A stretch of DNA of 64,000 nt. Origin: Lepidodermella squamata. Lineage: Eukaryota > Animalia > Gastrotricha. Where the stretch lies: NCBI GenBank assembly GCA_047495785.1, contig JBLDXI010000054.1, positions 806,001-870,000 on the forward strand, in the 5' to 3' direction. Positions 8,188 to 33,254 of this stretch are shown in pieces (position 1 is the first letter of the stretch; the number at the start of each line of letters is the position of its first letter). The position numbers and the translations under genes were made by a program. The notes beneath the pieces are model-generated. The model was not told the DNA's origin and did no database searches. It was given only the letters and a program-made list of their open reading frames with translations.

Positions 8188-9348
8188 TCAGCTCAGAATG
8201 AGCCAAACGGTGATATATGATATCAAATAAAAGGTGAAAACGAGTTGGAAAACAACAATGTCAACAAGTAAATATGTAGCAACTTTTCTACCGAAAATCG
8301 ATACGTATTGCCCTGTAAATACTGGGAACATGGCGAGACATCCGCACATGATCGCCTCGTATAGCACACACACAGTAGCTATGGCAGCTTGTGACAAGCT
8401 GAAGATTCCAGCGACGACTGGGCTTGGGGTTTTCGGCAAATTTGCCTGGATGTTGTCTTGAAGAAAGAAAATCGACAACATAACAGTGCAGGCGAAAGCA
8501 GGGCGATCTGGGACATCGGCCGGAATGAAAAATGACGCCAAAACCAGCAAACTGAGAATTAAGCTTGGTGCAAATAGGTATGTTAGAAAATATTGCGGTT
8601 TCCGTTTGAATTCGAATATGAAAGTAGCAGCCGACACGTTGACATTGTATTCTATTAAGCCAAACGAGGAGGTACGCGTAGAATTATCATGTTCCCAGCC
8701 TGAATTGTCCTTCATAAACGGCGCTTTGTGGTTAACGATGAACACTGCTTTTGTAATTATGGAGAAATATTCGCTTCGAGGCAGTTCAAAGTCGATGCTG
8801 CACTTTTGCACATCGAAAGGAAAATACGTCACGTCCATATTGCAAAAGGACGTGAACTGCCCTGTTAAACTAAAACCAACAATTCCGCCGCGTCTGACCC
8901 AAATTTTAAGATCCCGGTAGAATCCGTCGACCATCGCAGGGTTTCCAATCGAATTGGCGTGTAGCACAGCTGGATACCAGTATTTACTCGGGTCCTCCTG
9001 CGATAGATGAAATATGTTCTCCGGCCATGCCACGCTACCCTTACGTGATACATTTCGGAACAAATCAGCAATGCATTTCGATTCATACTTGACGGAAAGT
9101 ATACCATAAATGGTAAAGGTTTCGGCAACGTCGTCGATATTGATAAATCGCATCGGTTGCAGTTCTAGCTCTACATGAATCGCTTCATTCTCGAGTTCAA
9201 TCGGTGTATTGACCGTCGGACCAATTCGACAGTTGCTGAGGATCGTTGCCGTTGGGTCGAAGTCCCATATGCTGTCGTTGTTGGCTGGTTTAGCCAGGGC
9301 ATAGCTGAGGATGAAACATGCTTGCACAACACGCAGTGCGGCAGTCAT
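8188..9348 (-). CDS. Intronless Cys-loop (pentameric) ligand-gated ion channel subunit, divergent, 386 aa
   Basis: Signal peptide; loop A WYPAV; Cys-loop CNMDVTYFPFDVQKC; pre-M1 FKRKPQYF; M1 (LFAPSLILS...FFIP), M2 DRPAFACTVMLS, M2-M3 LPKT, M3 and M4 hydrophobic segments. Confidence 0.92.
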   Translation of the reverse strand: MTAALRVVQACFILSYALAKPANNDSIWDFDPTATILSNCRIGPTVNTPIELENEAIHVELELQPMRFINIDDVAETFTIYGILSVKYESKCIADLFRNVSRKGSVAWPENIFHLSQEDPSKYWYPAVLHANSIGNPAMVDGFYRDLKIWVRRGGIVGFSLTGQFTSFCNMDVTYFPFDVQKCSIDFELPRSEYFSIITKAVFIVNHKAPFMKDNSGWEHDNSTRTSSFGLIEYNVNVSAATFIFEFKRKPQYFLTYLFAPSLILSLLVLASFFIPADVPDRPAFACTVMLSIFFLQDNIQANLPKTPSPVVAGIFSLSQAAIATVCVLYEAIMCGCLAMFPVFTGQYVSIFGRKVATYLLVDIVVFQLVFTFYLISYITVWLILS

Positions 9349-11832: not shown

Positions 11833-14355
11833 TCAGCTCCTTCGCGAGTCTGAAGAAAAGCGAACTCGCCGCCATACAACAAATCTAGCCAATTTGGACG
11901 CGTTCAAAATTATCGAATTTGTTACGACAAGCGCTATCGTCATGCTAGAAACTGACAGCTGAAGGGCTTCGTCGCTACGCATTTCCATCGCCGCAATTAG
12001 GATCGTGGCGATCGCCATCAAGCTGCTGCAGTAGACCGCTTTTGCTGTGGCTTTAAGCTCGTTCAATACAGTGATCTTAATCTTTGAACCAGGTGTGCTG
12101 CCCCGAGAGCTGCGAATCCTCGATAGCGTCACTTTCTGAGAAGGAAGCGTGGACAATCGTGAGATCGTTTTATCCTATCACAGTTCGCAGAATAAATTTG
12201 ACACTCAAAAACGCAAGAAACTTACAAAAACTAAGTAGGCTCGAAAGCAGTTGATGAGAATTGCGAGAATGTGAAGAATTCCGATGCAAAGAGCAGTACC
12301 CAACGTAACCTTGTTACTAAAATCCAACCGACAGACGACTCGAAAAAGCTGGTAGGCAACACTTTCGTCCAGCGAGTAGTTTCGTTCGTCTTCAAGATAT
12401 TCGTATGAAAATCCGCCCGAGAGCAGGAATGCCAAGATGAGGCCAAATTGCACCAAAACCCAAACATGCACGTAACTCAAAGTCTGTTTAACTTGATCGA
12501 CGAATTGATTATGCTTAGCGTGGGTATTCTCAGTTAACATGTGTCGCCCGCGGTGAAGCTTTGTGTAGAATCCAGCGGAGATGAAGGTGAAGCCTATAGA
12601 CAGGGAGAAACAACTGGCTGAACATGGAACAATAACAACCCTGGTGAAGGTCTGTAGAGTTACAACAGCTAAAATCGGATAGCATAGCATCAAAACGCTG
12701 CCTACGTTATTGCAGCAATTTTCAAGCAAGAATGCATCAGGGAAGGCCACAAAAAATGTCGGTCTTCCGCGCTTATAAGCCAAAATGCCTGCTATCATTG
12801 GAATCAGGTTTATTGCGATTCCAAATGTCGCAAGAGTTATGAGCGCCAGCAAGGCATGCCCACTTGTCGTGGCGGTCGGAATAGAAATCAACCGGACAGT
12901 ATCGCTTGGGGCGATGTTACCTGGAGACCCCCAGTTCGGACCTTCGTTTAGAAAGTCCACCGATCGATCGTCGGCTTGGTAGTAAGCTACAATCGGTCTT
13001 ACAGGGAGTTCATTTCGCACGGCTTTCTTGAACACCACAGGATTAAATCCTTTGGTATTTAGCGTAGTTCCCTTATCGAAGTGATACACGGATTTCAACC
13101 CATTCATCGAAGTTTTGTACAATGCTTGATTAAAAGCTTCCCGGAAAACTCCGCCGTTCTGTAGGAAATTCCGAGAATTCAACGTCCATTCCCGGATCGT
13201 CGAATTGAACTCATCTCTCAACCAGTTTTCAACCGAGTGAATGAGATAACCAGAGTACAGAGCGATGTCGTAGCAAAGAGGCGCAATATTAGTGGGGTCT
13301 GAAATTTGCGAGCCATTCACGATTTTCGCGTCGATTTTGCGTGAGAATTCAGTGCTGATCAGCCCGCTCGAATCTGCATAGCCTGACCCTGCTATATCAC
13401 TCATGGAACCAAAGGAAACGAGTAGCCAATTCTCCGCAACCTTAGCCAGCATATCCCTAGTGCACCAAGATGCAACCGAATCCGGAATTTTGGCAGTTGC
13501 CGGGTCAAAACCAGCCCAACCTGTAGCGAAATACGCGTAGCTTGGCCCAAACATGCCGAAGCGATAGAACCAACACGACAGCATGAGACCATTATTAGCA
13601 TTGGCCAGAATTATACGAGGTTCCAGACCTCGCATTGCTTTCAATGCCACCATCATCTCTTCCTTTTTGAAGTTTGTAGTCACCTTGCCGTACCACAAGA
13701 CTGATATATTGCGAGCAACAAAATGGCCTAATATCTCGCCCTCAGCGTCGTTAAAATACGGAAGGTCTTCGGTTATCACGGCGATTTTTCTCCAGCCCAT
13801 TTTCGCGCAGAAAGCAGCCATACCCTCTTGAGGCGTGAAAGCAGACGTTGTCAATGGAAAAACTGTACCGTATTGAGATCGAGTTGAAGTCGAGCCATAG
13901 AATAGGTGGGTAAGCCCGAAGATGTTTAGCTTATTCATGGAAAGAGCTATTTTCTGCTGGCCAACTGCAGAGCACCAACCCATTATGACTAGTGGTATTC
14001 GATCCTCACTAGGCCACATCAGCTCTTTCACCACCCTTTGAACCGCTAGCCCATCGCTGCATTCGTCGTCAATCATAGCTATCTGTAATTCGTAGCCGGG
14101 TAACCAAGATGCATTGGCGTGGAGCTGGTCTAGAGCTACCTCCATTGATTTTGGGCACAGGGGTCCTATTGAATTCGCACCGCTTCGATAGTTGACGTAT
14201 GCCAGCATTCTTATTACTTGCCGTGCTTTTGAAATCGGTAAGGATGTCCTAACGTAGCTATCCATGGACGCATTCGATAATACTCGCTGCCCCTGGGTAC
14301 ATCTCGCTTCGAAGAAGGCAAGAAACATAACGGAAACTTCAATTGAAAACAGCAT
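11833..14355 (-). CDS. Class C GPCR, GABA-B-like, ~823 aa; exons 14355-12226 and 12174-11833
   Basis: Signal peptide from ATG 14355 with TATATATA ~60 bp upstream; VFT motifs (LPGYELQI..DDECS, GWRKIAVI, PRIILAN, YDIA); 51-nt phase-0 GT-AG intron joins AYLVF to DKTISRL...LNELK and TM6-TM7. Confidence 0.9.
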
Positions 14356-17300
14356 GCTTTGAATATAATAACTTGAACTCCAGCAACTTTTTTGTTTCAA
14401 GATTGCACCATGAACTATATATAAGAGAGATCTACGTCAGCGGCCAGAAACCTGGAACACCTGGACACACAGGAGCGTGATAATAATCCAAGTCTCCGGG
14501 CGGCCTATGTTCAAAAATATTGTCTCCAACTAATTTCGGACGTTTATAATATTTGAAAGCTATATCACTACGACGTCTATCGCCACATTTTCTGCCGAAT
14601 TTCGTCGCAGACGTTATAGGTGCATGGGATAAGCGTGATTAGGCAGGATAGCCCAAAATTAGGTTTGACTCATTAATTCTCAGTTCATTTGTTATTATTA
14701 TTATTATTTTTAGTAGTATTAGTATGCGTCTCGTCGCTGGCTGTATGTGACCACGAAAAGTAATTCGTCGCAGTATTTGGTACAGTGATAACTGAGACCC
14801 ACCGGGCGCAGATCAACTGAAGCCTTACATCCTCGATAGTTCCATTCTTTAATCAAATGAAGATAGCATCGAAATTGTGAAATTGACCGTTGGGTGTGGG
14901 GCTACCTGTACGGATTTTGTGCGACCTGTACGAATCAAGTCGCTCTCCCTCGCCAGCCATCGCCCGACCTACCTTGATGCCAAGTTGTTGCTCAACAGTT
15001 CCAGCGGTTGGCTGACTGTATTCCTCCATGATACGCATTGTACTGTTCATTTTTTTCCGCTTTTCCGGGTCAAAGTCCATGGTGACCTGGTTTGCTTGGT
15101 CTCAATGTCGGAAAAAGTGTCACCGCCAAGTAAGTGAAGCGGACAAGTGGCCAAGTTACCAAGTGGTGACGATGGACTTTGACCCGGAAAAGCGGACTTT
15201 TTCCTAAGTGCGAGTTCTTCCTCGACGTGAACGACCCTGTGCTAAGGTCGCGAACGAGGCTTGTGCAGCGCGAATTGGAGAAGAGTAGCATTGTCTCGAG
15301 AGACTGACAGCGAAAAATATGTGAATGGTACACATATTACCTTAGAGTCGAGAGGAAGTGAAGTTTAACTTAATGATAATCATGAAATAAGAAATAATGC
15401 GAAAGGCTGATATATCATAGCTTTTCTGCTCTGACTTACAAACAAATTTTTAAGAAATTTGAGAAGTTTACAGGCGTAGACGGATTCACTCGCCCAGTAA
15501 GGCAGATTTACCCTAGTAATAAAAATGGTGCACGCCGTGAGGCGGTCCTCGGCCATGCTTCCCCTGGTCCGCGTGACTTTGGCTGAACAGGAATCGTGAC
15601 AAGGCATGGCTCTGCCTTAGCATGGCATGGCACTGCCTGCACGGAGTCCTCTCTAAAAAGATGTGCTTAGAACCTAGTCCAGGACAGGGTCCTTGCTAGT
15701 TAAAAGTAACAAGGACCTTGTGCGGGCCCTGAGCCAAGATCTTGGCAGGATGTGATTTTTTGTGTGAGGCACGTAGATCTTGGGAAGAACTGTGTTGTGA
15801 CGGCGACCCTAGCCGAGGACCTTGTGATGAACTTGTGAGTTGTCCTTGGTGAAGTGGACTTGGAAATTTTTTTCAAATTTTTTTGTAAGTTGATTGGTTG
15901 CCGCAGTGTTTTCTTAATTATAATCGCTGCTTGCCGTATTACATGCTGGTTATAGGCATTATTTGCTATTTTGTTTTTAAATATAACACTGTGTCTATAT
16001 TTTTAACCTTGAAACACAAATCTATATCTTTTCATACTTCAAATATAGATTTGAGTATGAACTATATTTCTGATCTATATCTGAAATATAGATTCAGGTG
16101 TGTCTATATTTTTCACCTGGAAAATCTATATTTTAAATATAGATGCCCATTTCCAAGCCCAATACTTCCGAGATCTCTAAAACAGCTAATTCTAACGGAA
16201 AAACGCAGGGAAATAGTTTTCGCAACGCAATTTATTATGAAAGAAAATGGAGAAATTCAATTTTGAGAATAATTTAGGCGGGGACAGCTTGGCAGGCGGG
16301 CTGCAAAAATGGGTCGTATGAACCAGAATTTCTCAGAAAACTCCGGAAAATCGGGCAGCATTTCGTCCCCGCTAGGCATGAATTCGCAGCGATTCGCGGG
16401 TCGGATCGCGCAGAAAATCATCGAACAGGTACGGTCAGCAAGTCGCCACCGAAAGCACCGGGAAAGCTGCTCCAGAAGATCCAGCATTTGACAGCATCTA
16501 GTCCCCAACTCGCAGAAATCACCACCTGGGACTGCATCTTGCAGCACTTGGCCAGCGACAGTTCCGCGATTCCATTGCACTGGGAAAATGGATGTACCAA
16601 ACACCGTTGCAACGCGCTTGTCCGAAATCCGAAACTGAGCCATTTTTCAGCGCCCCGGAGATGAAATTCAGACGGACTGTCCTCGAGTCTTGTGCATCGC
16701 ATCCAAACGCGTGTCGTTCAAATCGAACCAGTTTCTTCAGGTTGAAAAAGCGCAAGGTTTTCGCGAACGTTGATTTCGAAGGAAGCAGGGTTGATTGGTT
16801 ATCGAAGGGTTGATGGGTTGTCGAACCATTCGGCTTGGAATGCGTCAGGGTTGCAAATCGGAGCAGAATTCTGGGAGAATTTGTTCGTGAAATTCGAGCA
16901 TAGGTTCGGACAGAGAATCGACGTTCAAAACGAAACGAAATTCGAAAGAATGAGAAAAAATGAGCGAAAATGAATAGCAAGCCAGTTTTAGATGAAATTT
17001 TAAGTTGGATTTTTTATTTTCTATTACTACTGCGTTGCGAAAAATATAGACACCGTGTAATATTTTACGATACAACATTCGTAGAAACCTATATTTTCGT
17101 GAAGCACTCGTATAGATCTCGTAAAACTCATTCACCTCGTGAAATCTCGTCTCCACTCGCCTACCGGCTCGTTCCGCCTCGATTTCACTCGTTTCATTCG
17201 TTTTACTCGATCTATATTTCGTGCTTCACTCAAATATAGATTCCTACTCATGTTATATCATACAAATATAAATTAAAAAATAGATGTTATCGATGGAGCG

Positions 17301-17669
17301 GAAGCACATGTTGTTATGGTTGTGTTATTGTTATGCGGGCGGAGGTGGTACTGCTGTTTGAGTTTCGGTTATGAGTTTTCAGCTGAAAACTATTGTGTTC
17401 GCTGTTTGCTTACTAATCGGTTAAACGACATGTTAGCTAGCTGTTAGCTAGCTTATTTGCAAAGAAGCCTGGTGTGTGTGCGAGCCATCAGCCCAGCGTG
17501 TCTGGGGCTAGTAACACCAGCGTTAGAGGAGCTAAACGCAGCGTTACTGGAGCGAAATCCAGGATTGCTGGTACTAGTAAAGGTAAGTAGATATAATATC
17601 AGGTGTGAGTAAGTGATGGCCAATTTGCAATGTTATGCTGTTAACGTCAATGCTAAGGCGATTGTGCAG

Positions 17670-18079
17670 TGATTGTTGCGACGGAGCACTCTTATTCGTG
17701 CGCCAAGCCTCCGATGGTTAACCCGGTGGTTGTGAAGGTGATGGTGAAGGCGGCCAAGCCGAAACGTGTTTGTTCTCTTAAGCAGAAGGTGAATGCTAAG
17801 AAAAGCGGTAAATGTCAAGGCCGTGTAGAAGGCAATGGTGATGATGTTGATGTGGCGGAAGTTTTTCCCTGTGCGATATGTGCAAAGCGTTGTACATCGA
17901 ACGTCGATCTTCAAAACCACCTGAAAACGCACAACAGTCATGTGAGTTGCCATGTATGTGGGATGGCTTTTGTGACCGAGGCGTCATTGCAATCACATGT
18001 GAAATGCCGCCACCCTGCTCCTCTGCCGGACAAAAGGAAGGTTATTGTTAGGCCGAAGGTTTGTCCGAAGAAAAAATGA
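17670..18079 (+). CDS. Transposon-borne C2H2 zinc-finger protein (last exon; 5' exons unresolved)
   Basis: Two C2H2 fingers CAICAKRCTSNVDLQNHLKTH and CHVCGMAFVTEASLQSHVKCRH; Lys-rich flanks; acceptor TGTGCAG at 17669 and candidate donor GTAAGT at ~17583. Confidence 0.75.
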
Positions 18080-18422
18080 GTGCTAAAATATAGGCGCATT
18101 ACTTATAGTATACAGTCTCAATGTCTGCGTATGCAGTAGCGTGTGGTGTTTTCTTAAAGTCTCTAAAGACTTTGTTTTACTGATTTTTTTTTACTTCATA
18201 TCTGTAGCCTGTGGTTATATAATAGGTAAAATTATTACATTTTTATCAGGTACTGAAGACAAATGCAGCTGAAAGCGCTCTTTTGTTATTTATCAATGTA
18301 CCTATTTCTACTCTGCACTATTTTATTTCATTGTTATTGTTTGACTTTTATAGTGTTGTTATTTTGCCCGTAATTTACGACGATAACGGCGACCATCTAC
18401 GTACTTGTGGATTTTTGCTATA

Positions 18423-18865
18423 ATGGGGAAACGCAGGAAGTCAGGAGGTCGTATAGTCAGAAAACCTGGCGACGATAAAGCTGCTGAAAAACCGTTAATA
18501 CAGCGCAAAGTTCGACGACGACGCGGCGCGGAAGTGTTTTCATCTGTTGTGTCTAGCGACAAAGAGGAGGGCTCTGGCAGTTCGAGTGAATTGACGGCAA
18601 AAATTGTTAATCCTACTAGACCTCGACCAAAATCATCTACCGTTCGATTCATGTCGACATCTAAAGTTGCTAAACCAGAAGAAGAAGAACAAGAAGATGA
18701 TGATGATGATGATGATGATGATGACGAAGATAGCGAAACTAGTTATGCGGCTGGTGGCGAAGAGTCTGCGTTGACGCTGTCGTCGTTGTCGTCGTCAAGA
18801 CTTACGACTCAGCCGTCGATGCTGGCGTCAGGCCTATTTACGCTCAGTGTGTGTGGTCAAGGTGG

Positions 18866-18914
<49 letters not shown>

Positions 18915-21900
18915 TTAGGACGAGGCGACGGCGAAGAAGAAGAAGAAGAAGAAGAAGAGGAAGAAATGCTAGAGCGGGGCGACGACGAAGGCGGAGATGA
19001 CAGCCGCCCCCCATCAGGTGCTGTAGAGCCGATGACCGTCGATTCATATGCTGCGGAAGAAGAAGAAGACCAAGCGGTAGCTCAACGCGATACAGCCGAT
19101 TTGTCAACTGAAAACAGTTCAATGGTTGTTATGAACCGGAATGATGATGATAATGATGATGATGAAGGAGATGATTCGGGCGATTCAGCCGTATTATCAG
19201 ATCGACTTGTTGTTGTTAATCAACCGGGGACACTTAATATCGTGGGAGCTGGCAGTTCGAGTGAAGACTCCTCGGCAGATGAACAAGACAGCAGGCTGAC
19301 AGATATCGGCCGTCCTTTGGCATACTTTCCGCTGTTCGGCAGTGACGGGGAGGAATTGAGCAGCGACGACAGTGATGTTGATCTTGATGTAAGTAATGTC
19401 GCAAATAATAGTTTCCCCCCTGAATGGATTTTTTATTCTTTGCTTTTTATTTATTCATCAATTTAAAATATGTCATTCAACGCTGAAATTTGATAGATTT
19501 GATCGCAGTTTTGGGTACCTATGTAAAATCGGGTATTTTGGTTATATTGTAGCTTAGTTGCGTAATTATTAAAACCGCTCAACCATGTCAGAGAAAGCTC
19601 ATCAGATATTGTCTCATTTCAACAAATAACTTCGCGAAACTCCGAAATTTCATCGTCACATGACTCTATCTCCATCGGCTCAAAGCAGAGCTCAGAAGAT
19701 GATCAATCGGTTGAAAATTTCTTATCACGGCAAACCTGAAGGATATAAAATTAAATGGGTCATAAGTTTTAAGAGAATTTATGCCTCTCTGTCTCGTTCG
19801 ATTAGAAACTCTCGCGAATTGATTACGTCATTCAATTGCAATCTGAACGAATTTTGCAGCAAAAGCGTTTGAGCCAGCAACTCATTCCGCTCAGTAAGGA
19901 CTTCCTCAGCTTTTTTCATAGTGAAATCAGTCATTTCAGCCACTTTGGAGTTGATGGGTTCTGTGAATATTTAAATCGCATCTTCTACTCAACTTTTGAT
20001 ATCAGCAAGAGTTGTGGTCAACTTCTCGTCGATAGTAGCCTTAATAAAGTAACCCTGACTAACTCTGACTATTTCAATCGGTTTTCGTACTAAATAAAGT
20101 CGAAATGAAATGAGTAGACCAATTCATTGCGAAAGCCTTACATGGCTGGCCAACCATGCAATATCGATTTTGAGCATCTCCTTGTGACAAAGTAGACAGG
20201 CGTCGCAAAAGGATTTTTGGCGGTGGCTACACTCGTTTCGATTCTCAGTTAGCACGACATGTTCACATGCCATTCCTAATTCCGTTGCAACTGAAGGAAT
20301 TGTTTGAAAGACAATATGGGTCCTTTTCTTGGCGCGCGCGCATCATTATTTTTTGTGTCACAAAAAATGTGGCTTTAATGATGCGTGTTGCGCCACGCGG
20401 TTGTGTGTGCGTGTGCGTCACATGACGCAAGTTGCGTCACTTGTTGTGTTCGCAATATTATATTTCTAGTAATTAGGACCACACAACAAAATAATCTGTT
20501 CATTTGATATTTATTTTTATAAGTAAAATGTTAGTGTAACTTGAATTGTATTTGTTCAAATCACTTTAGTTTTCAAAATTTAATAGAATTTCGCAACTTT
20601 TTAAATGTGAAATGTAAAAGCACCACAGTTATTCCCTAGAATTGCTGCAGTTTTGAATAGGTAGCGGCAATGATACATTTTTTCCGGCTATCTTGGTTGA
20701 TAGCAAAATTGTTTTCTTGAAAAAGTATCATTTACTATTTAACCTATTATAAAAATTATTTATTTTCGAATGTTGATAATTATTGTTGTATAGCAGAGCT
20801 AATTCATGTGTTTTTTGTGTGTAATATTTCCAGGTTGAAGATTGGTCTTCTGAGGAGGATGAGGAGGATGACGACGAAGAAGAACGGCATGACGATGGCG
20901 GTGTTGCAATTCAAGGCCAAGGTCAAGACCACCCGGCTGCACAAGTACAACAAGGAAATGATCAACCACAGCAGCAGCCGGCGAATCGATTTCCTATTCA
21001 AAATAGCTACGCCTACACGGATTTTGTTCATAAGCCGAGTGACGAATCTGACGATCCACATGACATTATGGGGCGGTTAAGGCGACTGGAAATGCAACAC
21101 AGGTTATCTCGATCAGCAATCGATGAGGTGTTGCAGATGGTTAGAGCGTATTGCCAGCCACAACTGCTGAAACACGTTCCGAAGTCATGCTACGTGTATC
21201 GGAAGCGGTTGGAACAAAGCGGGAGTCTGGTAAAGCCGTCCTTCAGAAGCTTCATGTGCCCGAAATGTTTCCGCGAGCTTGACAAAGACAGCAAATGCCC
21301 TGTTTGCAACGAGAAATTGGCGCCGTCAGCTCGGGCTGAAGTGATTGTACCATCTTTAGCGTGGCAGTTGCTCACTGTTCTCAATGATTATGTCGTTAAA
21401 AATGGCATCACTCTACAAACTTTGGGTCAACTTGGCCATTGCTTACAATTACAAGTCAGCTTCGACGGCACCCCGTTGTCAAGGCGAAACACCGGCTGCA
21501 CTGATGTGTGGCCTTTAACGGCGTCGATTGTCAACCTGCCGATTCACGCTCGATTCAAGCCCCATAATATCATCATTATGGGCTTGTGGCAAGGCCCCTG
21601 CCATCCGCCTTATAGGAAACTTATCGAGCTGTGCCTCAACAAAACGTCACGCGAATTTCGGGCTCCTAAAGTGTTCGAGTTTCAAAACGGTGTGCGCATA
21701 AATATGGGTATTTGTCTGCATTCATTGATAGCTGACCTAATAGCCAGAGCGCCGTGTTTAAACATGACTCAATTCAATGGTGAATACGGCTGCCCTTATT
21801 GCACGGTTTGCGGGGTGACAATAGAAACCGTTGGGTGGCGATATCGGTTGGTGCCAAATCTCGATCTATATTTGCGAGGACCGAGTGGCATTGATGAGAC

Positions 21901-24900
21901 GGCATTGCAAGTTGTACGGGAAGGCATTGTTTCACACTTAGGTATGCAATTTTTTATTATTTTATTTTAAATAATGATAAGTAGCTTTTGATTTTGGTAA
22001 TAAATGTTTAAATACTAGCCCGGGCTTCTAGGTTTTCAATGTCCAAAATAGGCGAAAAACTGAGCTTCTATTCGAGATAGGCTACTAAGAACAAGTAAAG
22101 GGCAACCGTTCTAACCTATTTTCGTGCTCTAAGAATATTTCTGCCTCATCGTCGCTGTAATCACTGTTATTCATAGCTCTACTTCTCCATTCGAGTCATT
22201 ATTCATCTTGAGAAGTCAGAATTCCAGTTATATTCTTGAATTTATATGAATTCATTGTAAAATTTTGATGTCGACCTTCATGTGTTTAAATTTGTGTGTG
22301 TTTTCATTTTTCAGGCATCTTCGGGTTATCTGGGTTCTACCCTGATATGGTTTTCCCTCGGGACGCCCCAGTCGAACCTATGCACTGCTTCGAAGAAGGC
22401 ACTGGTCGTCGCATGAACTCGGCCTTCCTGTTCAATGACGATATTATACCTGCTGCTTCTCGAAGAGTGATTGCGTACAAGATGAAAAACATGCATCTCC
22501 CGGTTCAGTTAATCTCGGTTCGCCTCACTGCGTTTGATGACTCAGTGTTAACCAAGTGGCGCGGCAAACACATGAAGCTGTATCTTTGCGTCATTGGATC
22601 GACTGTATTGGCGTCGGAGCTATCGGACGCCTACTTTTTGTTATTCCTATCATTTCAACTCGCTTTCCGCATGCTGCTGGATTTTAACGAACAGGATGTT
22701 GAAGAGAAGCAATTTGCTATCACTAGCAGCCAGACGCTGTTGAATCGCTACGTCAACGCGATGCATCAACTACTGGGTGGCGACGAAGTCCTCATGTTCA
22801 ACCTGCATCAAGCCTTGCACCTTCCAGCGTGTGCTCAGCAGTTCGGGAATGTTGGTAATATTTCGGCTTACAGCTTCGAAGGATTCCTTGCCCGACTGAA
22901 ACAAGAATTCAAAGGTAGGAAAATTATCCTGCTTCTTTTTTTCAAAATTGTTAAATCTAGACTTCTGGACTAGTATTCTTTTGAAATTATTGCTTTCGGA
23001 AATACTTGTGAAGTTATCAGCATATATTGGAATTTGAGTTTATTTCATGTATAGATTATATCTAAATTTAATTTTAATCTAAATTAGAAGGGGAATTTGG
23101 ATTAGAGTTGTTGTTCTATCTATTCACCCTTGGGAATTAAGATTAAAGATGGACCGTTGGGAAGTAGCCTGCATAAATCCGAGTCAAAGAATGCGAGGGT
23201 TGAGTAATCGTCCACTCACCGGGCGACTTGAGAACACTTTTTTGCGCTTCTTGCCACCTCTTGCCGCGTTACGCATTTATTGACACGCAAATTCTGCGTC
23301 ACAATGTAGTCACTTCTAAGACAATTCTAAGTTGCAATGATCGCAATTCATTGAGTCTTGAACGAAGTGATGTAATTTGAGAAGCTGTCCAAGTGCAAGG
23401 GCAATTGTCGTCGCGAACATGCCTGTCCTTCGAGTGCAGTAATTCTGGGTCAATTTCAAGCAAGGACGTAATGTCCCAGTAATCCGACTATAAGGTAGGT
23501 GAGTCCGCGTTTAGGAGCGTTGACCGGGTTGGCACCAAAATTCGCAAGGTGTTCACGAATCTGGCCCGTGTGAGATCAAAGACAACGAACTTCCTTGCCT
23601 TTCAACCGTGTCTGGGCGGCATCGGCGGCAAGTTCGTACAACGCCGACGGAGAAACTAGACAGAACGTAGTATTTCTGTAGTACAATAACAATTTTGGTC
23701 AATTGGATGCCTGCATCGAGGACATCGAAATAATGGCGGGGTTCAGAAAAATCATGGGCGAAGCCGGCGAAAAACCATTCAGTTAATGAATTCCAGACCG
23801 GTGTTCTTTCGGTTAATGAGGCTCGGAGCTTCGTCTTCGGAACAAGTGACATGCCAGTCCTTCAAATGTAGTAATTCTGGGTCGATTTCATGCTAATACT
23901 TCATGGCCACAACTTTTCCAGCTCTTGCCGCCTGATGAAACGCATTTCCGCCGTTACACTTGTTTAATTGACGCCAACATCATGCACTCACGAGGTATAT
24001 ATTGTCTTGCGAGGTCAGGTCTTGCTGGAAGGCAACCCATCAGCAGCATCGGCGACTTCATCGGCGGTCAGGTTTTGCTTTCCCATCGGCCTGACTTTCA
24101 TAGAAAAAACTTCAGTTAGGGTCGTGCAGTTCTCATGACCCTTCTCAGACGGACCACGAAGGTCGCGAACCCTAGGAAACCGCAAGGTCCGCCCAATCGC
24201 AGATTCACGTCCACGGTCTGAGTCAGTGATATCGGCAGCCCGGACTGGGAAAATGGGAGCAGACTCAGGGTCGATTCAAATCACGGGATGAGTGTTGAGG
24301 CGTCAAGTACTTCAAGTATTCGATCATAGGGAAGAAGTTCCTTGTAAGAGGCCGCTTAGTCAATGGGCTAGTGAATCGCTGAGTCCCTACCAAACTTTGT
24401 TGGACGAAGTAGTGTCCCTGAGAAAGCAACTGCATTCTAAAAGTGACGAGCCATAGTAACTGTTGACGATTTGTTGAATTTGTGCGTTAATCAACGCTAG
24501 GAAAGTGCGTTAGGAAACCCGATAATGTTCAGTGATGGCCGGTTAAATTAGTAGTAACAGTAATAGTAATCTGTAGTAATAGCGTCATTTCCTAAGGCGG
24601 AATGCGCTGGGCTTGGGGTCCCGTGACCAGCGATTCTAGTCTTGGCCCCCAATCTGACCAATGTTCCGACTGTTGGCAACTCGTGAGATATGACAGCCCG
24701 GTGTAGTGGCGTGGCATCTGCCATATCTTTACAATCAATATCCACGTTCATCTGTTCGACCAAGCGTTACGTATGTAGAGCAGACGTGTCGTAAAATGTG
24801 GAACGCTTTGAAGCAGATCCAAGACCCCGGCGAATACAATTATCCTGGGAAGAATGAGACTTAAGCGTAGTTGGTTGGAAAACCTGTTAGCAATGTTCCT

Positions 24901-25956
24901 GATAATACGAGTCGAAATTGGAAAAGTTCGTTGAGATTTTTTTCCCGAGATTTTTTTTGGAATTGGATGTCCAAGAAATGCCATTTTGAAGCAAGATTCT
25001 GTGCAGAACGATTTACTTGAGAAAGTTGAGAAGTATGAAAATGCGTCAATAAACGAATGGATTGAAACCTCGAGGAAAAACGCTTACGAGAAAACAGTCA
25101 TGGGGCTAAATATGTAGTCATTTTTGAGGAGGATTGGTCATTGAAATCAACGAAGCCGTCAAATTTCATTAATTAATATGGCGTTCTATTCTTTCGCAGC
25201 ATGTTTTCGCCTGCTCACATTTTACAATTGACGTACATTTAATTAGGTACGCGTGGTCAAATCGGGCAGATGTTGGAAAATCACCACTATCATCAGCTGA
25301 TGACTCCGCGCATAGTTGGCGACGACGACGCAACTACTGGGTCGAATAGAGTCATTAGACTATCAGCCGCTTACCAAACGGTTCTTCGTGCTGTGTTGCC
25401 CGTCACTGTTGACAAATGCAAAATATACACATCGTGCCGTTATCGTCATCAGCGATACGATGGCTGTTGGCTTCACCATGGCGCAACTCGAAAGCTGCCT
25501 CGTTCATTTTCAATCGAAGCGTTGATTGGCGATCAATTGCGGCCGGTGGAAATGTGTTGCTTCATTCAACTGCCAAATCAAATTCGCAATGAACCAGTAG
25601 CTGACCCAGAGAAGCTGCTCGTTGTATGCCGACTTCTGAAATACAATCGCGCTACCCCGGGAGTTGTCCTCGAGCGATTTCGCTCTATTAGCGCTACTCC
25701 AGTCAGCGATCTAGCGCCCAACGTCGCCGAAATGGTGAACGAAATGAGGCCTATCATTGACAGCGAGCTGGCTAAGCGAATTCTCAAGTCGTACCGCATC
25801 GATGATTTCAGCTTTGAGGACAAAATGTTGAAGAACAGCTACACTCTTCTCGCCATGTCACAGCTTCGAAGACGGCTCATCCTAATACCGTCAACTAAGC
25901 CAGTCGATAAACAATTTGACGGCGTCCCTTGGAATGTCGGTGTAGACTTGTATTGA
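18423..25956 (+). CDS. CACTA/EnSpm-family DDE transposase, ~1127 aa; exons 18423-19388, 20834-21941, 22315-22914, 25247-25956
   Basis: All four exons join in frame through GT-AG sites (phases 0,1,1; 3384 nt). Motifs: CPKC...CPVC zinc ribbon, SFDG (D1), VWPL, IADLIARA..NMTQFNGEYGCPYC (D2), EPMH, FNLHQALH, SAYSFE (E), KG|TRG across the last intron; long Asp/Glu-rich N-terminus. Confidence 0.9.
18676..18966 (+). repeat. Coding (GAT)n/(GAA)n trinucleotide tracts (poly-Asp/poly-Glu) in transposase exon 1
   Basis: Pure GAT runs at ~18696-18723 and ~18867-18911 and a GAA run at ~18933-18965. Confidence 0.9.
23240..24763 (-). pseudogene. Decayed ankyrin-repeat gene fragments, antisense, inside transposase intron 3
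   Basis: Minus-strand translations: NVDIDCKDMADATPLHRAVISHELPTVGTLVRLGA (24763-24640); GGNAFHQAARAGKVVAMKY*HEIDPELLHLKD (23965-23850); LLEIDPELLHSKD...(frameshift)PLHL (23490-23385); AARGGK (~23280-23250). Confidence 0.75.
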
Positions 25957-27734
25957 TGTTGGAAAACTGGCCGCTGGAATTCAGCGTACATGGAAGCATG
26001 ACTACTCACTACGATATTTGAAAGTATGTCGCAGCTATTTACCTTTATTTTTTTGCTCGCAAATATTTTGACGAATTTGGGCCAAATTTCCGTTCAGTTA
26101 AGGTTCAAATTTCCCACATAAATGTCATCGGGAGGCCCATGGGCAATGTCAAGCTCTCTTTTATTTATGTTTTTCCCACGAATATTGCTTACAGCCAGCG
26201 AATTTTAACCTGGGGTTGTAGTCACCCTACAGGATTTTTAAATATAGGGTGCCAGGAAAAGATGCCTTTGGGCTCTAATGGATGCTCCAAATATAGACAT
26301 CCATGAGCAGGAGTCGGTTTACTACAGCGTCTTGATATTGGAAATGGTGTACAGTAATGAATCGCAACAAATTAGTGGGAGAGATGGAGAGACCGGGACA
26401 AACAGGAACAGGACTTCTGAGCAAGTGATGCTACGGATAGGTTACAAATCGAGTGATCCTTGTCAACTCGCACAGCCATGGAGTCGTTGAGAATTTTTTC
26501 CTAGCTTCGGAATTGAATGTCGAAATGGGTCAAGTCGAAGTAATGCCATTTTGAAGCCTGATTCTGAACCGAAAGATTTAGTTAAATTGAGAAGTATGGA
26601 AATGCATCAATAAACGAGTCGATTGAAAACTCGAACAATCCAGCTGCTAGTGTTGCACCTCTGATTTCAGAAAAGACAAGTAACTGTCCTGCCACCGTTC
26701 TTACCCACCTTGAAGAGCTGAAAGACCCCCCCAAATAAAAGTAAATAGAGTCGATAAACGCGTGATCAATGTGGAGCAAACATGCCGAAGAATGATGAAC
26801 GTCTTGAAAATTTAGTTTAATTGATAAGTATTGACAACAAGACTATGACTGATTTGCCTTAATGGATTTCAAGATGAGATCGCAGAAACGGGACGAGAGT
26901 GATACATCGACTTTCTGGAGACAGCGATCTGATCGCGGGGTTTGGGTAAAACCCTTACGGCAGCAATGGCTACCTGGTGCCTTGTCTAAGTAACAGTATG
27001 GGCCTCAACATATGAAGTTGTAGTCTCAGTGGACAGTAGAAATGTATTATGAGTCTTGTATTCCGAGCCAAATTGCCGCGTAAATGTATTTCACTTTTGT
27101 CACAATTTGATTTTCCTGATTAATTATTGTTATTTTCTAATTACTATTTTAGGCATCGGAAATGAAAACGGGCTCTCTATGCCTATTCGACTTCTTCAGT
27201 CTTCAGTCTTCAGTTCAGTCTTCAGTTTCGACGCAACAACTGCATCGCGTGGGGTATACAGGTTTGCCAATCGAACTTTGCATGTTCATTAATTCTTATT
27301 GCTGTCAATTCTAAAATTTTAACACTTGTAACATTCCATTTCAGCCCTTCGAAGCTGTTGTCGATTGAAACTCGTGCGACCACTTGAAATTTGCTCATCC
27401 ATTGACTGTTCCAGATTCCAGACGTCCGGCTCATGAAACTTCCGCAGCCATCTATATTGGGCGGAAACCTTTCAATTTTCTAATTGATCGATTTAAATGA
27501 ATAACTGTCTATGAATTCGCTGAGAAATTTCTGTTGTCTGTCTTTGATTGCGAAATTGTGTAACAAAACGGTTTTAAGGTGGATGTTACCTTACTTTTTT
27601 ATTTTCATGAGAGTTCCGCTTTTATTGATTCTTCTATCTGCTACATGCCACTTTTGTGCTCCATGTTTCTCTCGCAATAAAACATTATTATTTGCTTAAA
27701 AATGATTTGTTTAGATTTATTCGTATTACCTAAG

Positions 27735-30700
27735 ATGCCTCTGTCACCAGCAGACGAGAAGCGTCTTTTGAAGATGAGCGAAGACGTGAGTCCTTGCTTT
27801 ATTTCACACAGCTTCTGCTTTTTTCGGGCAACTATAATTTTGCGGAATAAGTAGCATCTTTTGACGCCTTGTTATTTCTTCCTCAGTTGACATCCCAGAC
27901 ACTAATTGGCACCTTTGCGACGTGAAAGCTTTTAAGAATATTAGCCGCTAGGTGTCCGCCTGAGCTTTAACATAAAACCCGATTATCACTCCGCAAACAC
28001 AACATGCAACATCGGATTATAAATAAGAAAAAGCTATTTTTTCCGCAACGTACCCGTTTCCATCAAATTGTTTTTTTCTCAATTGTTTTCCTTGCTAACA
28101 TTCTCAGGAACGAAATACCGGGCTACCTGCATAATCTTCATCTTGTAAGTGAGATCTTGAATATCTTTATTATCTTGCGCATGTAAGACGCCATTATTTA
28201 ATTAACAAGCGCTTAAATTTGAAGGTAACTGCTATTGTTGTATCTCTAATTTCAGAGAAGACAAGTTACGGTTCTGAACACCGTTCTTACCCAACTGCAA
28301 GAGCTGAGAGATCACCTCGAAAAAAAATTGACAAAAGTCGATCAACGCGTGACGAACGTTGAAGCGACGTGCCGAAAAATGTTAAATGCGTTGAAAGAGA
28401 TTCAAGCGAAAGCCGCCCCCGGTGAATACAATTATCCGGGAAAGGACGAAACATACGTAAGTTTCATCACAGAATCGACCTTTCTTGGCATGTTATGATA
28501 TTTCTTCTAGTCTATTACTTCCATGATAACCGGCGAAGATGTTGAAATAATGTCCGGCTTCAGAAAGCTCATCGGTGAAGCGGGCGATAAAAACCCATCA
28601 TTAGCTCGTCTTGTCGGCTGGGTCGCCGTCCAAAGCCATGTTTTTCCTGTAAATACTCTCCTTTTCTTGCAAATTTTCTATCATTTCATTGCCTATTGTA
28701 ATTGCAGACTGCATACTTCGTGGACCATGTCCTCGAAGTGAGGCGTGAAGGCGGCACAAACCGCCTGCCCACGCCTGAGGATTTGACGAATCAAATTCTA
28801 GGCAAGCAAATACGTTAAAATGCCTAATCACCGTCATAATACGGCGTTCCATGTTTCGCAGAATGTTTTCGCCTTCTTACGGGCATCGAAGAAGGCAGCG
28901 CTGAAGCTTCAACTCTGCATGCCAAACTCAACGACCTCTTCCGGCAACTCGGGACTGACCAAGCCGGTCGAAAGAGAGATAAGAAGGCTATTGACAAATA
29001 CTTACTTGATTTGTCACGGAGGCACCCGTCTACCTGGGGCCCCGTGTCAAAAAAGCTAATTATCGCGCGTGGCCTGCGTAAAGTGGAAGAAGGTTGTTAT
29101 TACAATTTTACCTACCTTTTCTTCATGATATGTATTTTGACTTCAAGTTATGCAGCTCGAAGCTGAAAGTCAGCTCGAAGACCCTGAACCTCAGCCTGAA
29201 CCTCAACGTAATATTTGACATCATTTAGTATTATAAAATTAATCCGCTGTTTTTAGATCGAGCTCCGAAAATTATTTACGGGCAGAAGAAGGCCCAAGGT
29301 AATAAGCAAATTAGCTAACGATCTTACCTGTTTATGTTTCAATTTTATGCCTATACTAGTCATGCAAGAAGACACCGAAGAAGATGTCGAAGCCGAAGAA
29401 GAGCCTGAAGAAGATTTCGAGCCCGAAGAAGAGCCCGAAGAAGATGTCGAGCCCGAAGAAGAGCCCGAAGAAGAGCCCGAAGAAGAGCCCGATGAAGAGC
29501 CCGAAGAACAGCCCGAAGAACAGCGCGAAGAAGACGTCGAGCCGGAAGAAGATGTCGAGCCCGAACAACATGTCAACGTCGAAAAGCACGTCCAGGCCGA
29601 CCAAGACGACCACGAGCAAGGCCGTCTCCAAGATAGGATGGAGGAAAACGAATCTCGCCGCAGTTCTCGCAGTTCACAGCAAGGCATGGACGTTGACAAT
29701 GTCGGCGTCCATATTGATCAAGGGCAGGAAGAGGATGGTGAAGGTGAAGGTGATGTCGGGCGGTCTGGCGATCACGTTGCTCAACACCTAGCACCCGATG
29801 ACGGCAGCCATCCGGTGGTTACCGGCAGTCTACCGTACAGTCAAAGCCGCGACCCAACACCATCGATTGCAACGGCTGTAGACTCGTCGTGTAACGCTGA
29901 CGATACGAGGGGGGCTATGGGCCACGGCTACGTAGACTACGCAGCACGTCTCGATCAAGGGGAAGACGTTCCGCGTAAGAGGCCGCTTAGCCAATGGGCT
30001 AGCGAATCGCCAAATCTTATGCAAAGTCTGCTTGACGAAATAGCGGCCCTCAAAAAACAAGTGCAGTCGAAAAGTCACGAGCCCAGCGATGAGCGGGGTT
30101 CTAACATTAGCGACAAGCCTGTAGCTAACCGCGACATCGGCGACAACTACAACGCCTCGAGCAGCACCAAGCCGGTTGCGAACACGCGTGTCACCAGCGA
30201 CAACACCAGCAGCGCCACCAGCGACAAGCCTGCGGCAAAATCCCGCCCCACCAGCGATCAGCCCGGCGCCGCCACCAGCAACAAGCCTGCACAGAAGCCT
30301 CGCGTTACCAGCGACAAAACCGGCGTCGACACCGGTGTCTACATGAGCGCTAAGCCTGACTCCATGTCCCGCGCCAACAGCAGCGGCGCCAAGATCGGAG
30401 TCGCGCCCCGCACCAACACGGGCGGCAACACTAGCGTGAAGATCGTGGTGACGCCGCTCGCCAAACCGGGCGGCAACACGGGCGTCAAGGCCGGCGGCAA
30501 CACCGGCGCCAAGATCGCAGTGACGCCGCGCGTCAACACGGGCGGCAACACGGGCGGCAACACCGGCGTCAACACGGGCGTCAAGACCGGCGGCAACACG
30601 GGCGTCACGACCGGCAGCAACACCGGCGCCAGGATCACATCGACGCCCCGCGCCAATGCCAGCCAAAGCGCTAAGTTCGGTGCGAATACGTCGGCTAAAA

Positions 30701-30738
30701 AGGACTCTCGCCCACGTGTAACCAGCAGCCAGAGATGA
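27735..30738 (+). CDS. Transposon accessory protein (ORF2): coiled coil + BEN-like domain + EEEP acidic repeats + GGNT/NTG repeats, ~755 aa, 10 exons
   Basis: Exons 27735-27785, 27887-27921, 28108-28144, 28256-28456, 28511-28648, 28708-28801, 28862-29092, 29148-29207, 29257-29298 and 29360-30738 join in frame (2268 nt), using one GC-AG intron. Heptad segment LTQLQELRDHLEKKLTKVDQRVTNVE; BEN-like pattern LARLV...VFP..YFVDHVL...GG.NRLPTP..L.NQI...AKLNDLFRQ judged by eye. First two exons are least certain. Confidence 0.72.
29376..29566 (+). repeat. Coding 12-bp minisatellite GAAGAAGAGCCC (EEEP)n
   Basis: Tandem GAAGAAGAGCCC / GAAGAAGATGTCGAGCCC units. Confidence 0.9.
30410..30632 (+). repeat. 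Coding 12-bp GGCGGCAACACG-type repeats (GGNT/GVNT)
   Basis: Repeated GGCGGCAACAC(G/C) and GGCGTCAA units in the last ORF2 exon. Confidence 0.85.
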
Positions 30739-31397
30739 TTCCATGATCTACTTGCGTGACAAAACTGACTGAGAAGTTTTACCTAACTTTACTTAACCAA
30801 CTCTAACCTTTTTTCAGCTACTTTTTTTTTAGGAAAAAACGACGTACCGGGTTGCATCGCTCACCCCCGGTTTTATTTTTCATGCTTCTTCAAAGATCAT
30901 CCATTTTTTTTAGGAAATTTTGCAATCTCGGCAATTTTTTCTGTTTTTTCACCAAACGCAGTAGTTAGCAACACGATTTTACCATTTTAGCTGGGATTTT
31001 TTGAACATACTTGAAGCGGCAATATTTTTTCTATATTTCCACCGGTTTAAACTACACGAGTCTCATTTTTGTTTACCAATTTCTTCACTCGACAGCTTTT
31101 CCCTCATCTCATCATTTTTGGAATTACGATTTTTTTGAACATCACTTTTTTCAACATTCATAACATAACATTTTACATATTAACACAACAAACGAACTTA
31201 CGAATTGGAATTGGCTTATACAAGCCTTACCACTTAATTAGCCGGGGTATGAAAACCCGGCTTTAAAGTAAAGATTGTCTAATTTCTATTGAAATTAGGA
31301 GCTCAGTTAAAACTGTTATTATCGAAGTTATATTGTATCATGTACGCTGGAAATCATCGCCGTTGAAGCATCGCTAATTTGTTATGCACCGATCGAC

Positions 31398-32003
31398 ATG
31401 CAACTCGCAACTGACGACCCGCGGCTTGACCCGCGGCAATTCAATACTTCCTCGGTTTCGGGCTCATTTTCACTGAACATTAACCGTTTCGGTAAGTCTA
31501 TAGTCGCCAAAAGTAGGTTTCTACCCATGATTCGTGTGTTCATTTATTTTTTTTCGAATTCTATGCTTGCGTCCCACCTCTCAATTTCAGCCCATCCTTT
31601 TTAAATTGTGTTCTATGCTATCTATTTCAGCCTTTACATGGGGTACAATCGATACTGGCTGCTATCGATTTCGCACGGTTAACTGCTATTGCTGTATGTC
31701 TGATTTCAGCGAATATGACTTCAACTGTTCTCGCAGCCATTCTTGCCCACCTGGATCAACTCTAGGAGAGTTCGGCGCCCAAGCATGATCTCATCGGTAT
31801 CATCACTATCATCTCGTGAGTAACAGCTTTCCACCCTCACTGCTAACAAACCGTCATTGATTTGTATCCGTTTTTCAGCCTCAATTCACTCAACATTGAC
31901 AGCAACTATCCGGCGCTGGCTGCTTGCTGCTCCAATGACCTACTAAAAGTGAACAATATTTTTTTATTTTATCATCTTTTATCTTCCGATTCTTGACAAT
32001 AAA
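31398..32003 (+). other. Possible small spliced transcript near the right end of the CMC element (coding status unclear)
   Basis: Canonical donors GTAAGT (31492), GTATGT (31694), GTGAGT (31816); acceptors TTTCAG (31630), TCGCAG (31736), TTTCAG (31878); AATAAA at ~31998. The last three exons splice into one open frame, but I found no in-phase ATG exon. Confidence 0.4.
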
Positions 32004-33254
32004 ACACCACGTTTTCTGACATTCAAATCATTTTCCTTTTCTCACCTCATTTATGTTTCAACTCGCATTTTTCTATTCTTTTTCATATAGGTGATGTTAA
32101 CAAAGATTGAATTGAAATGAAATGAAAATTTAACGGGTTTTATCGATGAAAATGTGGTTTGTTCACTTTCGTTCATGATCGGCCTTCACTCGAGTGATCA
32201 CTCGTCGTCGTTACCTGTTCACTTACTTCTTCCTCACTTCCTTACTTCAGGATATCTCCGGTCTTCGGTGATTTCGTATTTCGTAAGTCGTAGTAAACAA
32301 GTTTTCATTTACCGGCTCGCACCGTTGGCTAGGGAAAGAATGGCTGCATGGTGAACAACTGCTCTGGAACAATCGGCGAGCGGTGTTTGTGTGCCTCTGC
32401 GTCTGCTTTTTCCTCTCCGTTTCTCTCTCCTTCTTTCTCTCTCTCTCTCTTTCGATGTCTCAATCTTTCGAGATCGAGATCGAGAGTGAGATCAAGAAGT
32501 AAAGAGAGACACGGCGAGGAAAACGCGCAGACGCAAAGCCACACAAACACCACTCGCTGGTTGTTCCAAGAGCAGCGGCCCACCATCCGCCCTTCCTACC
32601 CTGGCCGGTGCGGGCCGGTAAAAAATTTTTCGCCGATCTTTTCCCATTCCTGCCACGATATCAGCCTGTTCCTGCGAGGATCAGTCAAGTTTACCAGCAT
32701 CGTCAACTACTCCTGGCATGACAACTTGCAACTGTAGTTCCAACCTTCCACCTTCCTTCGTAGATTTTCCCCAAGTTTCTCTCAACATCCCACACATGAC
32801 CTTACCAGGATACTTAGCCACCAAAAGTGAGCAAGACCTTAGTACGCTCCTGACCCAACACCGTGCGAGGTGCGGGACAACTTATTGTCAAATTCAATTC
32901 GGACCAGCTCATGCCGCATGACATGCGTCCTTGCTCATTCCTTACACTTCTCCTCCCAAGGCATTTTTTATCACTAGGGTAGGGCTAATGTTGGTCAAGG
33001 ACAATTAGCTCCTCATGATAGGCCTATGGGTAGATCTCTCCTTGGAATTGCCCTTGGGATATAACATGCTAAAGAACTCAAACAGTTTCTTACTCCGTTC
33101 TTTGACGGACAGTACGCGTCTTGTCTGTTTTTAATGCGAGTAACAGCGCATTCAGAAAATGTGAGTCCGACCGTGGCCTAGATGCGAAATGTTAATGCGT
33201 CGAGGACAGTATACGCATCATGTCGCATTATTGTATTACGCTCTAAAAGCACAC

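Follow-up and report, generated by a model that had tools for sequence, protein, structure and literature searches.

The window, by which is meant the whole stretch of 64,000 nucleotides of Lepidodermella squamata DNA analysed here (G000:C54:806001-870000 of a 121-Mb genome, to which all the C-numbered loci cited below also belong), contains at positions 15511-32979 what is very probably (at roughly 85%) a copy of a cut-and-paste transposon of the CMC (CACTA/Mirage/Chapaev) type. This element resembles the animal TRC transposons, with CCC-type ends and 2-bp target-site duplications, and carries a transposase gene, a C2H2 zinc-finger gene that is part of the element and a third gene, called ORF2. 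The original prediction of a CMC/CACTA-type element with a 2-bp target duplication, carrying a transposase, a C2H2 gene and a further co-oriented gene, is upheld by the results described below. As far as can be read from its sequence, this copy is coding-intact, and the assembly contains no other full copy of its subfamily.

To judge from the family to which it belongs, the 1127-residue DDE transposase would recognise CCCTAGTRATAAAA at the ends, cut the element out and insert it elsewhere, duplicating 2 bp of the target. Comparable in this to TnpA of En/Spm and the Myb-like protein of PIF/Harbinger, the C2H2 protein may bind DNA as a cofactor or regulator.

Ends of the element and its relatives in the same genome

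The element is 17.5 kb long and is delimited by short inverted ends, CCCTAGTRATAAAAA, which are identical in 14 of their first 15 nucleotides, or in 17 of 18 if one 1-nt indel is allowed. At the left end TA is followed by CCCTAGTAATAAAAATGG from position 15511, and at the right end the reverse complement of CCCTAGTGATAAAAAATG runs to position 32979 and is followed by TA. An inverted repeat of this kind is, taken alone, weak evidence for the ends of a transposon. The ends are regarded as real because relatives of the element, located through protein comparison, terminate in the same sequence, and it is these matching ends that bear out the predicted CCCTAG inverted repeats with TA on both sides of 17.5 kb of DNA. 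In addition, a 17-nt end pattern, with at most one mismatch allowed, has only two non-self matches in the 121 Mb of the genome, both of them adjoining element-related DNA.

The closest full relative, about 76% identical in the transposase exon, is located on the opposite strand at C19:3557024-3582486 (25.5 kb). Its two ends read TA followed by CCCTAGTAATAGAAA and TA followed by CCCTAGAATAAAAATG. Homologues of the zinc finger (51% amino acid identity), of the transposase exons (76, 69 and 63%) and of three exons of ORF2 (30-37%) are arranged in it as in the window, with order and orientation preserved. A second element abuts this relative: at C19:3557007-3557040 two element ends lie tail to tail, 9 bp apart (..CACTAGGG CGGTAAC TA CCCTAGTAAT..). 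The C19 relative also carries, at 3558777-3561321, fragments that are 80-100% identical to the window element.

A smaller family of 6.3 kb is represented by two copies that are 99.8% identical, G000:C33:2352065-2358368 and C33:2797509-2803800. Its copies end in CCCTAG, with CCCTAGTAATACC at one side and CCCTAGCAAACCC at the other, and the first 11 nucleotides of the 5' terminal inverted repeat of the window element are found at one of the ends. One copy is flanked by AA/AA and the other by AC/AC, which directly attests to transposition accompanied by a 2-bp duplication. These elements contain a zinc-finger open reading frame (ORF), a two-exon transposase of about 900 amino acids and two unrelated low-complexity 3' ORFs. 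Given the near identity of its two copies, this sister family looks recently active. C98, a sequence of 20 kb that carries an element of the C33 family as an inverted pair, matches part of the C33 locus with 100% identity and is therefore probably a haplotig or an assembly artefact.

The element at C24:1462930-1469164 (6.2 kb) is more distant, its transposase being about 27-33% identical to that of the window. It has CCCTAGTAA ends (CCCTAGTAATAAAA and CCCTAGTAAAAAA, flanked by TT/TT) with the motif AAGATCATGCAAGA inside both of them, and it lacks a C2H2 motif. Finally, C3:663931-664248 is a deletion derivative in which a copy of ORF2 exon A is joined to the last 72 bp of the element, and its similarity to the window ends exactly at TA.

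The target duplications thus differ from one insertion to another: TA in the window and in C19, AA and AC in the C33 copies, and TT in C24. The ends and 2-bp duplications of these four relatives indicate that the boundaries at 15511 and 32979 are correct and that the TA at each side is a 2-bp target duplication. Besides the full relatives, fragments 82-100% identical to the element occur on C19, C13, C3 and C33; together with the apparently recent activity of the C33 family, they indicate that the clade of the window element has been mobile in this genome.

Two other kinds of transposon were considered for these ends. The CCCTAG sequence recalls piggyBac, which is ruled out by the absence of TTAA (the flanks are TTTA and TAGG), by the 2-bp duplication and by the CMC-type transposase. 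The flanking TA recalls Tc1/mariner, which is ruled out by the AA, AC and TT duplications of the relatives.

The transposase gene

The transposase is predicted to be encoded by four exons (Table 1) that give 1127 codons without a stop, the GT-AG introns having matching phases. The same is true of the three co-oriented spliced genes as a whole, whose frames had been predicted to be open: all introns are GT-AG except for one GC-AG intron in ORF2, the phases agree and no frame is interrupted by a stop. In alignment with the homologues a conserved KGT motif straddles the junction of exons 3 and 4. The segment 25243-25953 (237 amino acids) was also considered as a separate gene, an "ORF2" of its own, but this was ruled out, as it is contiguous with the transposase ORF in the C33, C24, C30 and C4 relatives; it is the last exon of the transposase. 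In the C33 family the acidic region and the transposase are likewise contiguous, in one ORF.

A HMMER pass over 1.84 billion representative proteins (E<=1e-3) gave 1183 homologues of the transposase, the best with an E-value of 1e-27 and 32-35% identity. The long homologues carry the domains DUF1258, Transposase_21 (tnp2) and DUF4218, and those that bear them lie at E-values of 1e-15 to 1e-13, so that the link of the window protein to these families is a transitive one. The motifs FDGT, ADL, CPYC, HQALH and FEG of the window protein align with conserved columns of 12 long homologues. The two aspartates, CPYC, HQALH and the glutamate correspond to the combination of C(2)C with H(3-4)H by which the CMC/CMCT clade is characterized (PMC12730594).

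Comparison with the C19 relative points to constraint on all three genes: in the transposase, the zinc finger and ORF2 exon D, the level of non-synonymous differences is much lower than that of synonymous ones. In transposase exon 2, 43% of third positions differ as against 16% of first and second positions. Expressed as proportions of non-synonymous (pN) and synonymous (pS) differences, the values are pN 0.17 and pS 0.73 for exon 3 (across exons 3 and 4, pN is 0.17-0.26 and pS is saturated), pN 0.34 and pS 0.78 for the zinc finger, and pN 0.45 and pS 0.90 for ORF2 exon D.

The zinc-finger gene

The protein encoded immediately upstream of the transposase matches the Pfam family zf-C2H2 (PF00096) with an E-value of 5e-8 and 33 bits, above the cut-off of 25.2, and a second finger is visible in the sequence. 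Upstream of its coding sequence there are a GTAAGT donor at 17582 and an acceptor at 17669, so that a short non-coding leader exon ending at 17582 is likely on these splice signals.

Whether the zinc finger travels with the transposase had been named as a check of the original prediction, and it does. Immediately before the transposase, C19 and 4/4 of the C33/C98 hits show a layout of two fingers, an RHP motif, a basic tail and a stop; in the C33 family the zinc finger is directly upstream of the transposase. The identity to the window protein is 51% in C19, as given above, and 36% in C33/C98. The gene has consequently been retained in three lineages whose transposases are about 38-76% identical. 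No other convincing paralogue of this zinc finger was found in the genome, nor any host paralogue outside the elements. Since the zinc finger co-travels and no host paralogue was found, it is considered a gene of the element rather than host cargo. It is also specific to this clade: the more distant C24, C4, C42 and C30 elements have no C2H2 motif. Among the homologues of the transposase in other organisms, the best 150 were checked for fusions of the two proteins, and none has a C2H2 motif (0/150).

A stronger role can be proposed for this protein, namely that an animal CMC transposase strictly requires it as a cofactor binding the ends in a sequence-specific manner, which would make it a functional counterpart of TnpA with an independent origin, and that both proteins are co-expressed from one promoter, by alternative use of a common leader exon in splicing or as a spliced-leader operon. 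This proposal is speculative, and we regard it as rather doubtful. If it were true, the transposon would be exploiting the trans-splicing machinery of its host for a two-protein system.

ORF2

ORF2 is modelled with seven exons that encode 714 amino acids, and a tentative first exon with an ATG would extend it to 761 codons. Its introns are 49-111 nt long. One of them, 28802-28861, is a GC-AG intron, but the GC donor at 28802 is GT in a paralogue that is 83% identical (C3:2422212-2423027). The junction is considered supported because the C3 paralogue has GT there and an indel between the two falls inside the intron.

Four parts make up the predicted protein: a coiled-coil exon, a region of some 150 amino acids that is conserved, an acidic repeat rich in E and P, and a tail rich in G, N, T and S. 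The conserved region contains a FRQLGTDQ..GKRDK motif that is common to the paralogues. In its middle region the protein has, by eye, a spacing of hydrophobic and charged positions that may be BEN-like. The original prediction described ORF2 as BEN-like or related to DUF4806, and this was not confirmed: searched exon by exon with E-values up to 10, ORF2 matched no Pfam family, although a domain split over three exons could escape such a search, and the BEN (PF10523) and DUF4806 (PF16064) models, run against the genome in six frames, gave no match at the ORF2 locus; the spliced ORF2 was not searched. Nor was any look-alike found in the ESM Atlas or any relative among the sequences of the PDB.

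ORF2 also co-travels with the element, since colinear homologues are present in the C19 copy and part of the gene in the C3 deletion derivative. It is absent from the C33 and C24 elements, which have other, unrelated 3' ORFs. ORF2 is therefore confined to the sub-lineage of the window and C19 elements, as an orphan third gene, and was probably acquired by their common ancestor.

In the repeat region of ORF2 (29360-30744) more than one frame is open: the +1 frame encodes at 29360-29788 a basic repeat of the KKSPKK type (143 amino acids), and the antisense strand has an ORF of 304 amino acids at 29830-30744. They match no Pfam family. These extra open frames are probably a by-product of codon-periodic repeats.

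Alternative explanations and status of the copy

Several results weigh against the identification of the region as an inserted CMC transposon. The direct Pfam match of transposase exon 2 is to DUF1258 only, and its 25 bits are below the cut-off of 33.1. The ends of the element are of the type CC..GG (CCCTAG..CTAGGG), and not CA..TG, as is usual for CMC transposons (PMC12730594). As regards the subterminal regions, 4/7 of the occurrences of CAAGGAC in the window lie within about 1 kb of the ends, a weak enrichment that is only suggestive. Taken by itself, the similarity to the C33 zinc finger is weak (E-value of 1e-4), and a word search of a protein collection with the zinc-finger protein of the window retrieved no relative. 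In addition, both 400-bp termini match only themselves in the genome, the flanks are unique, and no empty site, paralogous or in a haplotig, was found in the genome. With single-copy termini and no empty site, the insertion itself is something that we infer. The search for copies with identical ends, suggested with the original prediction, thus turned up no near-identical full copy.

It is nevertheless hardly credible that the inverted ends match by chance and that the region merely consists of three adjacent genes. The repeat is certainly short, 7/100 shuffles give at least two matches to an end pattern that was itself taken from the data, and a reversed control pattern matches the genome about as often as the real one, but four independent relatives share the end sequence in the right orientation and with 2-bp duplications. 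A composite origin of the 17.5 kb, in which the native element comprised only the zinc finger and the transposase while the ORF2 region was acquired by capture or from a different element, is unlikely. The C33 and C24 relatives, of about 6.2-6.3 kb, do without ORF2, and fragments of ORF2 lie at loci devoid of transposase (C3, C13, C33:222k, C74 and C55), as such an origin would predict. However, the order of the ORF2 exons and the ends that enclose them are the same in C19, the C3 derivative ties ORF2 exon A straight to the 3' end, and ORF2 exon D is constrained in comparison with C19. ORF2 was probably acquired by the ancestor common to the window and C19 lineages, in which case it would still be cargo of the element.

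Two further possibilities concern the present state of the copy and the expression of its genes. The original prediction saw in it a young and possibly active element, a view that finds no support in its single-copy termini, in the distance to its closest full relative or in the repeat nested near its 5' end. At the other extreme, the copy could be an immobile relic or a domesticated locus, that is, a single-copy transposase cluster kept by the host, whose ends are no longer used. Its status as the only full copy of its subfamily, the excess of synonymous over non-synonymous differences from C19 in all three genes, and the nested repeat would agree with this, and yet we consider it quite unlikely: both ends and the TA flanks are still recognisable, active transposon lineages also show purifying selection between diverged lineages, the scattered fragments mentioned above attest to past mobility of close relatives, and the sister family has been recently active by its 99.8% identical copies. 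By contrast, it is a real, if tentative, possibility that the zinc finger is not a separate gene but part of one transcription unit with the transposase, a shared leader exon being joined alternatively to one or the other, or the two forming a spliced-leader operon. The gap between the zinc-finger stop and the transposase ATG is only 343 nt in the window and about 115 nt in the C33 family, the donor at 17582 is of the leader type, and in both elements there are unpaired acceptor-like sites upstream of the transposase ATG. Short alternative products are made by SmTRC1 (PMC1636069), and alternative splicing from a shared leader would parallel that of tnpA and tnpD in En/Spm. This last possibility concerns expression only and is compatible with the identification of the region as a CMC transposon with its own zinc-finger gene.

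Nested repeats and other features of the window

The coordinates of the features are collected in Table 1. A dispersed repeat foreign to the element proper is nested 470 bp from the 5' end of the element; it has inverted arms of its own (15979-16004 and 17040-17065). The last 150-330 bp of this repeat recur at many loci with 94-98% identity, and a piece of it, 17126-17275 (150 bp), is found inverted and 96% identical upstream of the C19 zinc finger (C19:3576881-3577032).

Part of the remaining length is due to internal duplications. The region of ORF2 exon A occurs four times in the element (at about 24620, 26641, 28226 and 31680), and the segment 24620-24863 of intron 3 resembles 28226-28461. 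Both intron 3 (22915-25246) and the spacer 25957-28003 contain fragments that match C13 together with partial copies of ORF2 exon A; within 23493-24302, two stretches match C13:622617-623131 with 83-94% identity. Antisense ankyrin pieces had been proposed for 23493-24302; the ORFs scanned there gave no Pfam family. A suspected fourth transcript found no support: no fourth conserved gene was found, and the remaining spacers are partial internal duplicates without a conserved ORF. The ORFs in the nested repeat and the antisense ORFs gave no Pfam family, and Rfam had no match in 14000-34500.

The neighbouring host genes are receptor-like, with pieces of class C G protein-coupled receptors (7tm_3, ANF_receptor) and of a Cys-loop ligand-gated channel. 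The element is thus placed between receptor-like genes, in repeat-rich DNA.

Table 1. Positions in the window of the element's parts and of the neighbouring genes
Feature	Position	Strand	Remarks
Neighbouring host gene	1058-2869	+	
Neighbouring host gene	8188-9348	-	
Neighbouring host gene	12205-14400	-	
Left TA, putative 2-bp target-site duplication	15509-15510		Relatives show TA/TA, AA/AA, AC/AC, TT/TT
5' terminal inverted repeat, CCCTAGTAATAAAAATGG	15511-15528	+	15-17 nt common to the ends of the C19 and C24 relatives
Nested dispersed repeat, about 1.3 kb	15979-17275		At least 25 genomic copies, 82-88% identity
Zinc-finger coding exon	17670-18079	+	Coding sequence 17714-18079, 121 amino acids; two C2H2 fingers, basic tail, own stop
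Transposase exon 1	18423-19388	+	Start codon, basic stretch, long acidic D/E-rich region
Transposase exon 2	20834-21941	+	Zinc ribbon, first and second catalytic D, CPYC motif
Transposase exon 3	22315-22914	+	HQALH (H(3)H) motif, catalytic E
Transposase intron 3	22915-25246	+	2332 nt; contains foreign fragments, also an incomplete copy of ORF2 exon A
Transposase exon 4	25247-25956	+	C-terminal domain, stop
ORF2, tentative first (ATG) exon	28004-28144	+	Would give 761 codons
ORF2, seven exons	28256-30738	+	714 amino acids; open frame, consistent phases
ORF2 exons	28256-28456, 28511-28648, 28708-28801, 28862-29092, 29148-29207, 29257-29298, 29360-30738	+	
3' terminal inverted repeat, reverse complement of CCCTAGTGATAAAAAATG	32962-32979	-	C3 derivative has the last 72 bp
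Right TA, putative 2-bp target-site duplication	32980-32981		
Neighbouring host gene	62229-63995	-	

Comparison with known transposons

The window element contributes a family with well-defined limits and intact coding sequences to the animal branch of CACTA/Mirage/Chapaev, which has been little studied. Its C2H2 gene has stayed beside the transposase despite divergence of the latter to about 38% identity, which is the type of evidence that marks a cofactor and not captured cargo. If the zinc finger binds the ends of the element, a compact animal model for two-component CMC transposition would be available. For genome annotation, the three genes and the scattered fragments should be masked as transposon genes and not be counted as host genes.

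Among the plant elements, maize En/Spm shares with the window element a DDE transposase with C(2)C and H(3-4)H, the combination of a transposase with a small co-oriented accessory gene, the large size and the long introns. However, the target duplication is 3 bp and the ends are CACTA in En/Spm, as against 2 bp and CCCTAG in the window element. TnpA, which arises by alternative splicing, does not belong to the C2H2 proteins, and the window element shows no clear arrays of subterminal repeats like those to which TnpA binds in plant CACTA elements.

Mirage, from Caenorhabditis elegans, is in the Repbase classification the branch of CMC with 2-bp duplications, and the Pfam model DUF1258 was built on nematode proteins. 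The window element is similar to Mirage in its 2-bp duplication and in that DUF1258 is the only Pfam model touched by its transposase exon, even though below the cut-off. We know of no zinc-finger accessory gene described for Mirage.

With other transposons the likeness is one of function or of idea. PIF/Harbinger elements also have a separate small DNA-binding protein beside the transposase, but this is a functional analogy only, as their transposase belongs to an unrelated superfamily, their duplication is of 3 bp and their accessory protein is of the Myb/SANT type rather than C2H2. The VANC proteins of the Mutator-like VANDAL elements share with the case described here only the idea of extra transposon genes that counter host silencing; VANDAL belongs to a different superfamily and there is no similarity in sequence or domains, and the anti-silencing role suggested in the original prediction gained no support.

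The closest known counterparts are the animal CACTA-related TRC elements, which have 2-bp duplications and a CCC core at their ends (DeMarco et al. 2006, PMC1636069). Like the TRC elements of Schistosoma mansoni (SmTRC1), Tribolium castaneum and Aedes aegypti, the window element combines a Transposase_21-type transposase with a 2-bp duplication and CCC-initiated ends. For instance, the repeat of the Tribolium TRC element starts with CCCTAGTAG (PMC1636069) and that of the window element with CCCTAGTAA. Because its CCCTAG ends match the CCC core of TRC, the window element falls under a known exception to the CA..TG rule. SmTRC1 of S. mansoni gives rise to several spliced products (PMC1636069), and the window element similarly has predicted products besides the transposase. 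In contrast to TRC elements, which measure 5-9 kb and have inverted repeats of 27-54 nt, the window element is 17.5 kb long and its inverted repeat is of about 15-18 nt. Moreover, its accessory protein is a C2H2 protein kept in three sub-lineages, while the extra products of SmTRC1 are without detectable relatives. Since the 2-bp duplication, the CCC core and the several predicted products are shared with TRC elements, the window element represents a new family within a known kind of transposon. Its distinguishing features are its size, due to long introns, internal duplications and a nested repeat, its conserved C2H2 gene and its orphan third gene.

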